Below, piece after piece: positions 17,047-63,188 of a DNA stretch of 64,000 nucleotides. The stretch's first letter is position 1. Every line of letters starts with the position of its first letter. The notes under the pieces were generated by a model that saw only the letters and a program-made list of their open reading frames with translations, made no database searches and was not told the origin of the DNA. The stretch covers positions 62,372,001-62,436,000 of the forward strand of contig OX638154.1 in assembly GCA_951804945.1 (NCBI GenBank), read 5' to 3'. The translations under genes and the position numbers were made by a program. The stretch comes from Podarcis cretensis. Taxonomy: Eukaryota.

Positions 17047-18124
17047 TACTAGGGAAAGGATTAAAGTAAGGCAACACAGAGTTGTTTCCAGTAAGTGGTT
17101 TCAGAGAGTATGGTGAAAGGAAGGGGGTGCACTGGGACAACTAGAAGTTATGTGTCCATTTGTGATCTGGCATCATAACAGAACTATTGATTGTGTAGTC
17201 AGTCAATACGATAACTATGCAAATGGAGTAAGGAATTCAGTCATGTTTGTGGTTCCTGGATTAATGCAGATTCAGTTGGGTAGTTCTCTCCTAACTTGCT
17301 CTTTTTTCTGGTTCCCTTTTCTCCATTCCTCAAGAGCTCCTAAGTATTGGTAAATCATGTCACCCGACAGTGCATCTCTGTGCTGATAAGATTAATTTTG
17401 AACAATTATGATTTATGTTTAATCCTGTTGAGATATAACACATTCATTAATCAAAATGTATATTAAATAGCTTCACATAACAACAAATTCTCCAGATGTT
17501 TTTATCCTAGACTCCTTGCTAAAGTAAAATGTGTTTAAAATGTTGCTATAATGAAAGCTGTAGTTCTAAATAAACTTGAATTTGTTTAGGTTATCTATCC
17601 TTATTAGTATAGCAGAAATTGTTGCAACATTTTTAAACCTCTAAAAGGTCAGTATCTGAAATAATAGAGAAGAGAATCATATTCAAATCCTTTCATTCAC
17701 TTCCAGTTTGCACTCCATTTGCATCTTGTAAGGATGTGGCTGAAACATAAGCCTATTTTTGATCACTGATTTCCAAAAGTTTCATGCCTCAGCTGCAATA
17801 ATAGGCAAAGACATACACAGCTATGTAAATGGTGTTTGAATTTATGATTGTATCATTTGCCTGTCATTGTATTTTCCACCTGCAAAGCTTCCATAAACCA
17901 GTGTATTCTGAATAGCCATGATTTGTTCTTACTGCTGTATGTGATCTATGCAGTAGAGTACAATCATGGTTGCAGAAATGGCTTTGGGAGACACCCAGAA
18001 ATTTAACAGTAAGACATCTGAGGAAAAGGAACTGTAAAATATAATGGCACAAAGTGTTATGGTACTATAGCATCTGAAGAAAATGTTAATGACATAAAAT
18101 TAGATGGGGGTATGTGCGGGGGAA

Positions 18125-18490
18125 GGGACGCAGGTGGCGCTGTGGGTTAAAGCCTCAGCGCCTAGGGCTTGCCGATCGAAAGGTCGGCGGTTCGAATCCC
18201 TGCGGCGGGGTGCGCTCCCGCTGCTCGGTCCCAGCGCCTGCCAACCTAGCAGTTCGAAAGCACCTCCGGGTGCAAGTAGATAAATAGGGACCGCTTACCA
18301 GCGGGAAGGTAAACGGCGTTTCCGTGTGCGGCTCTGGCTCTGGCCAGAGCAGCGATGTCATGCTGGCCACGTGACCCGGAAGTGTCTCCGGACAGCGCTG
18401 GCCCCTGGCCTCTTAAGTGAGATGGGCGCACAACCCCAGAGTCTGTCAAGACTGGCCCGTACGGGCAGGGGTACCTTTACCTTTACCTTT
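18125..18490 (+). mobile_element. Full-length Sauria SINE, CpG-rich (young) subfamily
   Basis: Head GGGACGCAGGTGGCGC, B-box GGTTCGAATCC, (ACCTTT)3 tail, TSD TATGTGCGGGG at 18111-18121 and 18490-18500. Confidence 0.95.
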
Positions 18491-19939
18491 ATGTGCGGGG
18501 CAGGGGTACAGAAGGTTCCACCAACCTTGGATTGTTTAGCTTTAATAAAAATGAAGCAAAATGGTTGTGAATGCAGGAGGAGAAGCTCTCAATGGATGAA
18601 TGAAAGACATTTCATGTTTTGTAGTAATACCTAGGAACGGTGGGGGAGAAGGCTAGTAAGAATGCTGATGCTTCTTGAAAAGGTCTTTCAGTAGCTGCTC
18701 CAAAAGGAAGCTGCTAACATGCACAGGTTTTTTTTAAGAGAACTAGAAAACAATTTTATGTCTCTTTTATATGCCATTCACATGTTTTAATTATTCACCT
18801 TCATGTTTCTTAAAATAATGATTATGATGAATTCAGTTATCATGCATAGTGGCATCATTTGAGTGCTGAGATAGTTGTTAACCGCTGTTAGAGCCCGGTA
18901 AATAGATTAGGTGTTTTAAGAAAGAAAAAGAAGGTCAGCATTTTGGTTGATGTGTATAGTTGAATAAATGGTGTAATAGGTTCGGTTACTATTTTTTACT
19001 TTCATTGCACAATGGTTATTGTAATGTTCATATGGTAGATAAAAGTAATAAGAGCCCAAGAATGTATGGGTCAAAACAATCCTCCACACAACTTTGTATT
19101 GCTGATTCATATACACATTCAAGCAGAAGCTGGACGGACAGCTGTTAAAAATGTTCTAACAATCACACCTATCTTATGCCAGTAAGGCCCACCTGATAAC
19201 TGATAGATTTTGCTTAACTAATAACTAAATTAACTTTATGTTAGCATATGGCATTGTTTTTGAAATTTGTTTTTATTTTGTTCTTTATTTTACGGCATTC
19301 AATTTTTCTGGTGCAGATAGGTTTTCTTATAGATTGTTTAGAGAGCCCCTCTATAACTGATATAGAGGCCAATGGTTCCCAAGCTGGGGGCACCTGCCCC
19401 TTAGAGGGTCCACTCATTTAAGGGAGGGGGGAGGCTTCTTCAAAAGGCAGGTGCTTTAAGTCCCATTGGAGTAGCTTCTCCCCTCCTTTAAATGAGTTAT
19501 GTTTAAAGAAGAAGAGGGAGGCTGCTTTAAATACCACTTTTTTTTCAAAGAGCTTTAAGAGAGACCCACCCCACTCTACTCCTGTTGTGTCTCTGGAGGG
19601 TCAAACAGGAGCAGGGGGTCAGCAAAATTTGGAGGAAGGGTTAAAAAGGGGCTCCTCATACTCAAGAAAGTTGGGAACCATTGGTTTAGGCTACATTCCT
19701 TCATCCTTTGCATATATTCCTCCTGTTGATCAATACTGCCTATCAATACTGCCCATATTTATATTGACATTAGTATTCAGTAACTTTCATTCGTATAGCA
19801 AACATGGAACTGTGCTGTATCATGATTAAAAAGGTATTCTGAGGTGGTTAATTAATCAATATATGGCATTTTAAACCTGAGAGGTGTTGTTTTTGGTTGT
19901 TATTATGGTATGCATTTTTGTGTTTTTATATTGTACACT

Positions 19940-20240
19940 TAGAATCATAGATCATTGAGTTGGAAGAGACCACAAGGGCCATCGAGTCCAACCCCCTGCC
20001 AAGCAGGAAACACCATCAGAGCACTCCTGACATATGGTTGTCAAGCCTCTGCTTAAAGATCTCCAAAGAAGGAGACTCCACCACACTCTTCCTAATGTTT
20101 AGGTGGAATCTTCTTTCTTGTAGTTTGGATCCATTGCTCCGTGTCCGCTTCTCTGGAGCAGCAGAAAACAACCTTTCTCCCTCCTCTATGTGACATCCTT
20201 TTATATATTTGAACATGGCTATCATATCACCCCTTAGTCG
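19940..20240 (-). mobile_element. CR1 LINE 3' end with internal deletion
   Basis: ATTCTATG-type tail and CR1 3' UTR. Minus strand translates [51 protein letters not shown]|SVVESPSLEIFKQRLD, the CR1 ORF2 C-terminus lacking the usual WN-LP segment. Confidence 0.92.
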
Positions 20241-20532
20241 GATCTTGGATGATTACCTCAATTTCCCCAACACCAGCACCAGCAGTGAAGATCTCAAAGT
20301 AGGTGGTCTTGTTGGCAATGTTGCCCACAGGCTCCAGGCCAGGACCCTGGGCAGTGACCTTGCTGGCATCCCTGTGCGATTTGTCCACATTCACCTCAAA
20401 GGGGCTCTTGGCAATGTGCTGCCCAGCAAACAGTACCGTCACCTTGTGGATTCCTGTCACTTTTAGCACATACCACACAGAGAACGTCCGGTTCTTGTCA
20501 TTGTTGGCAATGACCTTTGCTTCTTCCCGATG
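20239..20532 (-). pseudogene. FLNA: Processed (intronless) fragment of filamin A, Ig-like repeats 1-2, 98 codons
   Basis: Translates [98 protein letters not shown], close to recalled human FLNA (about residues 326-423). No introns, no start codon, no poly(A). Confidence 0.9.
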
Positions 20533-21288
20533 ATCTTTGGATAAAGGGTGGTATAGAAATTTAATAAATAATAAAAATAATAGTTCTAGAGTGACACTGG
20601 ATTTAGCATCTAGAAATACACTGAATTCTACCCACCCCACCCCAATCTTTGTATTACCTTTGGGAAGAGAATAGACACTGTGACGTTGTCATTTTTGGTA
20701 GTGATGGATGATTTACCCTTAGCAGAACTGTTCTTCAGCTTGGGAAAATGTGTAAAGTTATCCACTGAGAAGACAGATATTGTGAACAGAATTAATATAC
20801 AGCTTTCTCTCATTTACTGTATTTGGAGAATGCCCATGGATCTTTTCCTATTATGTAATAGGAAGCATTGATATTTCCTGACTAGCGAATACAAGGAGGT
20901 TCAGGATTTTAAACTATTGTGCTGCTCTGCTGATCCATAGAAGATGATGAATATGAAATATTCCTGCACCCACACTACTAAGTTGGGTTGGAGGTTTGCG
21001 AACTGCAGAATTCTGGAAGGCCTTCCTGGGAGACTTCATCATCTATTCCATGACTCCACTAACCTATTATTCCATTTTTGCTTGCATTTGTGCATTTGGT
21101 GGATGGACATGACATGCATGAGTTGGAATGAACAAAATAGCTTTATACTTAGGGAAATGACACATGAATGAAATTTTAGACAGCTTTAATTTGGAAAAAA
21201 TGCTCCAACTTATAGTAATACAAAATTGATATGTGTACACCCATCAAGATCAGTATTGTCTAAATTTTCTTTTTATTGTATACTATAC

Positions 21289-47428: not shown

Positions 47429-48430
47429 TAGTGCACGCTAAGAGCACACATTAAGGCCACAACAGCAACAAAAAGCAAACATTAATTCCTTCTGGACAGA
47501 AGTAAGATAGATTCCCAAAACTGTTTTTTTTTTTTTTTTGCTTTGGTAAATGTTTTATAATATCCTATGCCTCACGAAGATACAGCACAGCTTTGGAGTG
47601 TGTTTAAAAATAACAGCAAATGAATTTAATGCATTCTTTTCTGTGTTTCTTTTTCCCTTGCTATTAATTCTTTATTATATTAATTGTCACACAGAAACAT
47701 GATATATAGCCAAGAAGCTCGAGACATGGTTAACCTGGGTTTTGGGGATTTTGTTTGATGATTTCTGGATTTTTGGTTATGTTGATTTTAAAAACTTTTT
47801 GACAGTATTCTTTATGACCATCATCAGCACCACCATCAGCACCACCACCTCCATCATCATTATCATTGGTTTTAGTGACCTTGCAGCAGAGATCTAAGCA
47901 TGATCTAAATCATTCATACAGGTAACAGTGATAGTGGGCTCTTCTGTTCTCCAGCAGGGGCAATACAGTAGAGTAATATTTGCTTCTAGAAGCAGCTTTG
48001 ACTCATTACACATGTTCACTATTTAATTCCAAGGATATTTTGTTGCAGAAAAGCAGGAGCTGCTTTAAACCACAAAGGAAAACTCTTCACTGAGTGAAGG
48101 CTGCAATTCTGAATGGTCCTTAGAAAACAGAATAGGACTCACTTCTGTGTAAAGGAGTTTAAAATCTCCCTTTGCTACTCAGTAAGGGAGCAGCAACTTT
48201 ATCCTTGCCATGGAGATGCAGAATTATGGGACTGCAGTGAAGTTGCACACTTCTTAGGGGCTGTGTGGACCCACAGATGGAATTCTGTTTGCACCCCATT
48301 GAGCAAAAGTAACATTACTACAGCACTAAAGAATCATAGAATTGTAAAGTTGGAAGGTACCACAAAGGACATCTAGTCCAGACTCGTGCAATGCAGGAAT
48401 CTTTTAGCCCAACAATGGGTTCAAACCCCT

Positions 48431-58188: not shown

Positions 58189-58346
58189 CCTCAGTTGGTT
58201 AGGGTGTAGTGCTGATAACGCCGAGCTTGTGGATTCTGTTTCCATATGGTCCATCTGCCTATTCTTGCATTGCAGGGGGTTGGACTTGATGATCCTTCCA
58301 ACTCTATATTCCAATCTATATTCCAACCTATATTCAATGATTGTGA
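58189..58346 (+). mobile_element. tRNA-derived (Ile-like) SINE with CR1-type tail
   Basis: ctcagttggttagggtgtagtgctgataacgcc head and ttgcattgcagggggttggacttgatgatccttccaactc tail, resembling the CR1 3' UTR at 19960-20000. Confidence 0.7.
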
Positions 58347-60406: not shown

Positions 60407-62818
60407 ATAGCACTAAAGTCAGATTTATAAGGAAGTAATCAGTGGGCAAGATCCAACCCAAAGCAGAGCAATACGCTTTTCTGTTTTCTTCTGTTTTCTG
60501 TTTTCTTTCATATCTTAAATTGTGCCTGTGGTATTAGTAGTGAATATAATCGGTTGTTTACTGCCCAGCCAAGAAGTCTAAATGGTGGTTCTGTCCGGAA
60601 TCTCTGGTATTTAAGTTCTAGCCCAGTGGATTTTCCCATAAATATTGTAAAGAATCATTATTCTAGAGAGCACCCGTCAAGAACGACATGATTAAGTGCA
60701 AGGCATTTCTCTTCCCAAGAAAGTGGTAACTAATGGCACAATCTACTGTTAGTCCTTCTGTGAATATTCATTAATTGCAAGGAAGAACTTCCCAGTGGAT
60801 TGTTAGAAATACTGATTTATTGTCAAATCAATAAAGCTTTAAAAATAAAAATAAACACTGTATGGGTGATCAAAGCAGCTTTAAAACAAGTTAGCACTGT
60901 ATCTCTAAGGAAGTTCTAAACTTCATAGCACTTTCTTTATGAAAGGTATTGGTTTGTCAGCCGTGCAGGTTAATGATTAATGGGGCTAGAAATCCACCCT
61001 GAATTGTCTGTTTGGTGTTTGATTGTTGTGGCCAGCTAAAGTACTACAGAGTTCATAGATTCTCTGATTTCTGCTTTAAATCGTCTCTTACGCAGCTGCA
61101 ATTTCTTTTTGCCATATACCTCCATTGTCCTGCCAAACATACATGAGAGAGTTGAACTGCAGCTATGCATTCTCAGCTACATTTTTTTCCTTTTCCTTTT
61201 TGATTTTCTGCTCTCCACTTTCACCTCCCCCACCAACCTCCACTGCAGATAATGGTGTATTGGATTAGCCTTCCTTGCTGCTGCATCAGATCCCGATCGA
61301 TTTATTGACTCTGTCAGAGAGGCTAGTACAGTAATTGTTACAAGAGCAGAATGGAAAGCAAGAACATGTCCACATAAAAAATAAAAATGACATTTTGTTC
61401 TTTCTTTACCTTCCTCTTTTTCCTTACACTATAGATCTTTATGTGTATACGCAACAAGAGACCACTTAAATTAACCCATTACTTCTACATTATTAATTGT
61501 GACAGTTGGGGTGCTACATGATTACAAACATATTATTGAAAACATTGATCTCACTCTACTGGGGTGCATTTTAGTAGTTTTTTTTGGGGGGGCGGCTTCT
61601 CTGATGGTTGTGTCAGGGTATCACTGAATCACATTTCCTTGCTGGCATTAGGTTTTTAATATGAATGATCTTGGAACTGCATAAAATAGTGAATCCCAAT
61701 AAAATGGTAATAAAGAGACTGAAACCCCAGTCCTATGTGTGTATAACTGCAATGGGCCATGTAGCAGCTTGCAGCTGTGTTGGTACAATGGCAACCTGCA
61801 CTGTTGCTAGTAGAACAGACCTATCGCCCTGTGCCGTGTATTCATCACAATCCTGTTACAGTTCTAGCCCTATGACAGCTGAAATGTGTTTAGGCTTTGT
61901 TGAATATGAATCATCCATAATCTTTTTTCTTTTCTTTTTTTTTAACCTTTTTTTGCCAAAGAACTGTTTTTCTGCTTTAACGTAATGTGATGTCCTGGGA
62001 TCAGCCCACACCAGCCATAGATCATAATGTTATGCTGGCACATTCTATTTTTTATTATTGCAGATACAAATGAAGCTTTCATTAAACTGCACATAAATAA
62101 GAAGATATATCAAATGCCATACTTTAGGAATCCTAAAAATTTGCTTTTGCTATTGCTCAGAGGAGAAAGCCGCTGGCAAACTGCATGTTTATTCAGAAAT
62201 GAGACGCAATGAATTAAATGGGATTTAGTGCCAGGTTAGTCAGCACAGGATACACCTTGGTCGTAGGAAAGATTATAATGCTTTCCCCGGCATACAATTT
62301 TGCCAGGATTAGACTTTAAGAAACCAAGCACTTGACAAGGGTTATTAATGCATTCGCCCATGTAGCAGTTCCAGTGAAATCATCTGGCAGGGAAGATTCC
62401 ATTGGCACCATTCATTCATTCATTCAGTCATTCATTCATTCATTTTATTTGTATGCCACTTTTCCACACACACAAAATCATTCTCAAAGCAACTTGCCAC
62501 AAAAAACAGGGAAGCATTTCAAACAAATAACATTTAGTAATAACATAGCAAAACAAAAATATAATAACATACAATACTATACAATAACTTACAATACAAA
62601 ACACCCAATACTATAAATATAACAAGATTACTTAAACAAGCAGCATCGCAACAGCAAAAATAACATGTGAGCTTCACCATTTCACCTTCGTCCTAAAAAC
62701 ACCCCTTCCATGATGCTGCTCACAGTCAGTCTCCTGCAGGAGCTTCTTGTAAGGTTTCAAGGGCAAAGGGGTTGAGTAGTTGGAAACACCCACTCCTATG
62801 ACGTTGCTCCGCTGGAAG

Positions 62819-62890
62819 CTTCTTCTTCTTCTTCTTCTTCTTCTTCTTCTTCTTCTTCTTCTTCTTCTTCTTCTTCTTCTTCTTCTTCTT
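62819..62890. repeat. Perfect (CTT)24 microsatellite
   Basis: 72 nt read directly. It abuts an L2-type 3' end on the minus strand (62891 to about 62995). Confidence 0.95.
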
Positions 62891-63188
62891 TATTACAATT
62901 GTATACCACCTTTATCTGAACATCCCAGGGCAGTTCACAACAGAAAATTACAAAATGGGAATACAAAATACATAATAAAACAGAAACAAAACAGAAACAT
63001 GCTTGTATCTGGGGTGAATAGAACCTTTAGGGAATTTTCATAAAGACCTTGGGATACAGGGAGAGAGCTACCCTCCGGCCCCACATGACACACCTCGTTC
63101 CTGACTCTATATTCCACCCCGCAGTAGATTAAATTTAAACATTCACAGTTATCATCATGTCTTGTTTGGGCTTCAAAATGAATGGCTA

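Follow-up and report, generated by a model that had tools for sequence, protein, structure and literature searches.

An intron-free filamin A fragment fused to a CR1-type LINE 3' end in a lacertid lizard genome: a probable template-switch retrocopy

Introduction

How can an internal piece of a protein-coding mRNA come to stand, without introns and without a poly(A) tail, directly against the 3' end of a LINE? This question is raised by an insert of about 0.6 kb on the minus strand of a 64-kb stretch of lacertid lizard DNA, within an intron that is putatively one of NFIA. The whole of this stretch is referred to below as the window, and all positions are counted within it. According to the account given in PMC5470649, which cites Suh 2015, the bird and reptile genomes dominated by CR1 are poor in gene retrocopies, and this was attributed to the need of CR1 for its own 3' end. 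A chimera between an mRNA and CR1 would be a side door through which host coding sequence could be retroposed despite that need.

The original prediction, made from the letters of the window, described 294 nt of uninterrupted filamin coding sequence that run on the minus strand directly into a same-sense CR1 3' end. It ascribed the fusion to a CR1 reverse transcriptase that had jumped from its own RNA to a cellular mRNA. Herein, the identity of each half, the joint between them, and the site of insertion are analyzed, and the possible routes by which the two halves came together are weighed.

Results

The minus-strand translation from 20535 to 20239 gave 99 codons without a stop, and these were matched to the Filamin family of Pfam (PF00630) with an E value of 6.2e-18 and a score of 65.9 bits against a cut-off of 26.9. 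The filamin-derived part proper covers 20239-20532 on the minus strand as 98 open codons, corresponding to the end of Ig repeat 1 and the start of repeat 2. Solved filamin structures also matched the piece, and the best positional match was the end of Ig repeat 1 in FLNB (4b7l, residues 299-347). The 5' limit lies within 20530-20535, where up to 3-4 letters could equally belong to the older repeat that surrounds the insert. Five filamin proteins were then compared with all 64 kb by local tblastn. Filamin similarity was confined to 20532-20239 (to 20236 with P0151), and a second filamin copy was found neither upstream nor beyond CR1 within the window.

The filamin part was further compared with proteins of 1.84 billion scanned representatives. 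It corresponds to residues 327-424 of P0001, a vertebrate filamin of 2627 residues. The FLNA-type database fragments were 87-95% identical to it over the same residues, as against 71% for the FLNB-type fragment P0158 and 65% for P0001; a Terrapene fragment named "filamin-A-like" was 84% identical. Because the identity is highest with the FLNA type, filamin A is taken as the parent, as judged from database fragments and P0001. The window piece differs from the closest fragments by a P-to-L change (in W-Y-V-P), a V-to-I change, and a G-to-R change (in S-H-G-D), which amounts to about 3 changes in 67 comparable residues. The first and the last of these are the VP-to-VL and GD-to-RD changes that had been singled out from the sequence as falling at conserved sites, and the closest database fragments do keep the original residues at both.

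The positions of introns were taken from short open reading frames on genomic contigs, listed under no species, which read from a filamin exon into an intron. Three exon-exon joints were located in this way on the minus strand, each at a place where the genomic read-through fragments stop matching the window: between E5 and A6 (20521/20520), between K31 and V32 (20443/20442), and after the first base of the Gly86 codon (20280/20279). In about four fifths of some 110 short filamin fragments, the match ended at Gly86 and was followed by unrelated residues, and in most of them it started at V32. The closest fragments, P0117, P0258, and P0259, are reptile-like and share the signature E-V-N-V-D-K-S-H with the window piece. 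In these three, 31-33 unrelated residues stand in frame between H-K and V-T-V-L, and they close with a pyrimidine-rich stretch and Q. Their residues after Gly86, together with those of P0161 and P0162, fit splice donors of the form GTAAGT or GTCAGT. The acceptor at E5/A6 is visible in P0130 and P0147, and the FLNA-type fragment P0157 contains all three introns. The introns placed by the original prediction (after EE, after HK, and within TAG) were all recovered in this manner.

The window sequence is uninterrupted across all three positions. Because the piece crosses three intron positions of genomic filamin fragments without a break, it was evidently copied from a spliced mRNA, as judged by introns known from database fragments and not from the gene of this lizard. 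The predicted internal exons are 78 nt and 163 nt in length, with a partial exon on either side.

The CR1-type part covers 19941-20240 on the minus strand. Translation of 20240-20019 gave the C-terminal coding tail of a LINE ORF2, 74 residues long, up to a stop codon at 20018-20016. The 3' UTR follows at 19941-20015, with a predicted hairpin at 19994-19957, whose fold z-score alone is not significant, and then an octamer-type tail at 19956-19941, one unit of which lacks a T. Database relatives of the ORF2 tail were 73-98% identical, with E values down to 3e-32. The named ones belong to Podarcis lilfordi and P. muralis, and the Podarcis copies were 94-98% identical (94-98% for one P. lilfordi fragment). 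Alignment with the relatives showed that they continue upstream as L-E-K-R before R-L-R-G-D-M; the window copy is therefore 5'-truncated inside ORF2, between E-K-R and R-L-R-G-D-M. The alignment also revealed a private in-frame deletion at 20088/20087 of 48 nt, or 16 codons, which all database relatives keep. The gap may have arisen when the reverse transcriptase skipped ahead during the same event, or else through deletion at a later time.

No Pfam family was matched by the ORF2 tail, none of its database relatives carries a CR1 label, and an ESM Atlas search with the tail returned unnamed clusters only. The tail presumably resembles ORF2 of chicken CR1. Because no relative is labelled CR1, the probable assignment to the CR1 clade was based on the architecture of the 3' end. 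In amniotes, the CR1 3' end consists of a hairpin and an octamer microsatellite, ATTCTRTG (PMC8665684, PMC4316615), and the terminal letters of the window element are this octamer minus one T. The end at 19941 is the same terminus as that of a second CR1-type tail at 48330, which has the exact octamer, and 19941 is taken as the true end of the element.

Other CR1-related sequences were also seen. The second CR1-type 3' end lies at 48330-48399 (minus strand) and carries the exact octamer ATTCTATG plus ATTCT at its end, and in a third, at 58262-58330 (plus strand), the hairpin leads into a repeat tail of another, 11-nt-like kind. Elsewhere in the 64-kb window, no CR1 copy covering the region of the junction was found, and no Rfam families were detected in the window. 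Two Podarcis muralis gene models, P0283 and P0285 (SYCE3-like and C2H2 zinc finger), include the CR1 ORF2 tail as coding sequence. Either CR1 fragments were exonised in these two or the annotation is wrong.

At the junction (20236-20241, minus strand), the filamin codons give way at once to CR1 codons of the same sense, with nothing between them, and 2-6 nt can be assigned to either parent. At least 2 nt (CG, 20240-20239) are common to both parents, in agreement with the overlap of about 2 nt that had been predicted; this value is only the minimum. The next codon after the joint is ACT (Thr), which equals the residue that follows Q-D-P in P0151, a mammal-type FLNA fragment. For this reason, the shared stretch may be 5-6 nt long, provided that Thr (ACT) also follows Q-D-P in the parental mRNA. 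Past the joint, the filamin frame reads from Q-D-P into T-K-G and a stop. A fusion protein was considered and rejected, because the filamin and CR1 reading frames differ by +1.

The position of the joint relative to the exon end was determined by a frame-compatibility computation on the intron read-through tails of database proteins, which are mammal-type fragments. When the tails of P0156, P0168, P0176, and P0178 were read in the shifted frame, from 26 of 29 to 34 of 35 residues were compatible with a next exon that continues unbroken well beyond Q-D-P. The joint thus appears to fall inside an FLNA exon, at least in mammals, a position that speaks against splicing in cis or in trans. A GT donor after the joint was also absent from the window.

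The insert is flanked on both sides by an older interspersed repeat. The upstream flank (20533-20600, minus strand) has an A/T-rich tail on the plus strand, and the downstream flank (19860-19940, minus strand) continues the same repeat, as judged by alignment of the joined flanks to a copy at 62870-63010. The joined flanks scored 78 against this copy, compared with 32 +/- 5.4 for shuffles, and the downstream flank alone matched weakly (z 2.7, against this one diverged copy). About 11 nt present in that copy are unmatched where the insert sits, and the search for further copies found only this one to be usable. Flanks that match successive parts of one older repeat would give moderate support for a single insertion. 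The placement of the unit inside an older repeat is likely from the joined flanks, with a weaker signal for the downstream flank by itself. Within the insert no poly(A) was found, as had been claimed, and no clear target-site duplication was found around it.

Two neighbouring features were noted. At 62800-63010 (plus strand), a long (CTT)n run precedes a copy of the repeat family that hosts the filamin/CR1 insert. A GC-rich island at 18100-18500 (0.61-0.64), with tRNA-like motifs in its translations, is probably a tRNA-derived SINE.

The region was also looked for in the contigs of runs with six organism labels. These held 0.57-0.88 of the sampled words of 19500-21100. The flanks alone give 0.63, and shares above this value therefore require part of the insert. 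In organisms E and F, the share was constant at 0.57-0.58, which would fit an empty site. In runs X15-X20, guessed to be RNA and carrying two other organism labels, 0.17-0.21 of the words were present, about the share of either half of the insert.

Overall, the translation, the Pfam match, the ORF2 tail, and the shared terminus agree on the bipartite structure that had been described, and its coordinates proved right to within 1-3 nt.

Discussion

The first point to be settled is whether the two halves arrived together. A landing of CR1 within a larger FLNA pseudogene was rejected, as filamin similarity is lacking on the far side of CR1 within the window. To our knowledge, there is no route by which a tailless 294-nt piece from inside an mRNA would insert on its own. 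Because of these two points, arrival in a single event is the economical reading, and we consider it probable. Divergence from the respective relatives amounts to a similar few per cent in the CR1 and filamin parts, which would be compatible with co-arrival followed by neutral decay. The insert itself, at about 0.6 kb, is non-functional: its frames are offset, and it has neither a start codon nor a promoter. At such divergence, the open filamin frame would not count as evidence of function.

The reading that we favour, with a probability of roughly 0.6, is one retroposition by a CR1-clade LINE in which reverse transcription of the CR1 RNA moved to a spliced FLNA mRNA. Target-primed reverse transcription would start on the 3' end of the CR1 RNA, with its hairpin and octamer tail, and about 300 nt would be copied. 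The enzyme or the growing cDNA would then shift, around the codons Q-D-P(-T), to filamin A mRNA in its spliced form, with probable help from 2-6 nt of matching letters. Homology may have guided this shift, or the enzyme may have jumped from end to end between RNAs that were broken. A further 294 nt or so would be copied toward the 5' end of the filamin A mRNA before synthesis ended early, and the cDNA would be attached to the opposite side of the break within the older repeat. The product would be a chimera with mRNA at its 5' side, LINE at its 3' side, and no poly(A), subject to neutral decay since.

In known template jumps, the landing site is mostly the 3' end of the acceptor, and an internal landing such as this one therefore needs a broken mRNA or a homology-guided switch. 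Two findings count against a single retroposition: no target-site duplication brackets the unit, and the continuity of the older repeat depends on one diverged copy. The jump of the CR1 enzyme from its own RNA to an mRNA, as originally put forward, stands as the best fit and has precedent; it was deduced from the anatomy of the insert, and the part of CR1's own enzyme in it is to be read as probable.

The insert could also be the daughter of a pre-existing composite. A truncated CR1 would have stood beside or inside an FLNA processed pseudogene, and a read-through transcript of the two would have been retroposed in trans and 5'-truncated, as in 5' transduction. Chimeras that arose by read-through or promoter capture are on record for L1 (PMC11838501), a stringent LINE mobilises any RNA with its tail at the end (PMC4476161), and the 48-nt deletion private to the CR1 part may go back to one particular source copy. 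On the other hand, no second copy is present in the window, and the origin of the fusion would merely be moved one step back. Had CR1 inserted into an FLNA pseudogene, FLNA would flank it on both sides at the source and the junction of the daughter would be equally clean, so that nothing speaks specifically for such a composite, and we regard it as unlikely.

A joining of the two RNAs before reverse transcription, followed by normal CR1 copying, is rather less credible still. The joining could be an RtcB-type ligation of cleaved fragments, which is known to precede U6/L1 retrotransposition (PMC6789731), or trans-splicing, as suggested for mRNA/L1 chimeras (PMC11838501). Trans-splicing is made less likely by an FLNA joint that lies mid-exon, at least in mammal-type genes, and by the lack of a GT donor after it in the window. 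Ligation requires specific RNA ends, none of which are known for fragments of mRNA bodies, and would not predict the letters common to both parents at the joint.

Equally improbable is the separate arrival of the halves, whether by two unrelated insertions that hit one and the same nucleotide or by the joint capture of loose cDNA fragments in double-strand break repair, with no target-primed reverse transcription at the site. The missing target-site duplication is in keeping with such an origin, and the apparent loss of about 11 nt of the older repeat at the site is of a kind that break repair can cause. CR1 insertions, however, often have no clear duplications anyway, and the complete CR1 terminus is as expected of priming from the tail. 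The exact abutment in the same orientation would have to be a coincidence, and the tailless filamin piece would again be left with no insertion route of its own.

Fusion of FLNA mRNA or gene reads with a CR1 copy during assembly is very hard to credit, as FLNA genomic reads would carry introns, the filamin piece has diverged from every database FLNA fragment, and contigs of several organism labels hold 0.66-0.88 of the 19500-21100 words, above the share that the flanks alone provide.

The template shift from CR1 RNA to spliced filamin A mRNA is thus retained as the preferred reading. A wider claim, that CR1-clade reverse transcriptases, which are regarded as stringent and as hardly ever producing gene retrocopies, can switch or jump onto the bodies of spliced mRNAs, and do so repeatedly together with L2 in this lacertid genome, is put forward tentatively, as it may well not hold. 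Such a process would scatter internal exon blocks independently of poly(A). If the claim is true, blocks of this kind, here parts of two filamin Ig repeats, could be exonised at new loci. The value of the present single copy, which has no visible function, is that of a mechanistic footprint.

Comparison with known chimeric retrocopies

The insert was compared with the known products of LINE activity. A classical processed pseudogene is, like the insert, an intron-free copy of a spliced mRNA. In contrast, the insert has no poly(A), stops short of the mRNA 3' end, represents about 4% of the coding sequence, and is without a target-site duplication of 7-20 bp. An L1-type processed pseudogene was therefore rejected as an explanation: in place of a tail, filamin stops at codon 99 of the fragment and CR1 comes next.

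Chimeras of mRNA with L1 at the 5' side, catalogued by TiMEstamp (PMC11838501), share with the insert the presence of sense mRNA exons on the 5' side of a LINE. They mostly contain first exons, joints at splice sites, and near-full-length L1, which suggests trans-splicing or promoter capture. The insert, in contrast, consists of internal exons that end mid-exon and a LINE tail of 300 nt.

A switch from CR1 to tRNA was proposed for the birth of PittSINE, and PittSINE and TguSINE1 (PMC5729268) resemble the inferred route of the insert in that copying starts in a CR1 tail and then passes to another cellular RNA. There, the acceptor was a tRNA and the product an amplifying family, whereas here the acceptor would be an mRNA and the product is apparently a single dead copy. 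The same process is thought to create SINEs.

The closest likeness of structure is to U6/L1 and other chimeras with a cellular RNA at the 5' side and a LINE at the 3' side (Doucet et al. 2015, PMC4476161; Gogvadze et al. 2007, PMC2104539), which include Anolis chimeras of U6 with the LINEs L1, L2, and RTE, a turkey U6/CR1 case left unresolved there (PMC4476161), and a tripartite chimera in Magnaporthe (PMC2104539). Like these, the insert is bipartite and same-sense, contains a 5'-truncated LINE that retains its terminus, and probably arrived as one unit. It differs in that the LINE is CR1-type rather than L1, L2, RTE, or MGL, that the 5' partner is an internal piece of spliced mRNA rather than a full or 3'-complete small RNA, and that poly(A) and a clear target-site duplication are missing. 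The insert is thus most likely an mRNA/CR1 chimeric retrocopy that belongs with the template-switched LINE chimeras, and its interest is mechanistic, not functional. It would add the CR1 clade to the LINEs for which such chimeras are documented, namely L1, L2, RTE, and a LINE of a fungus.
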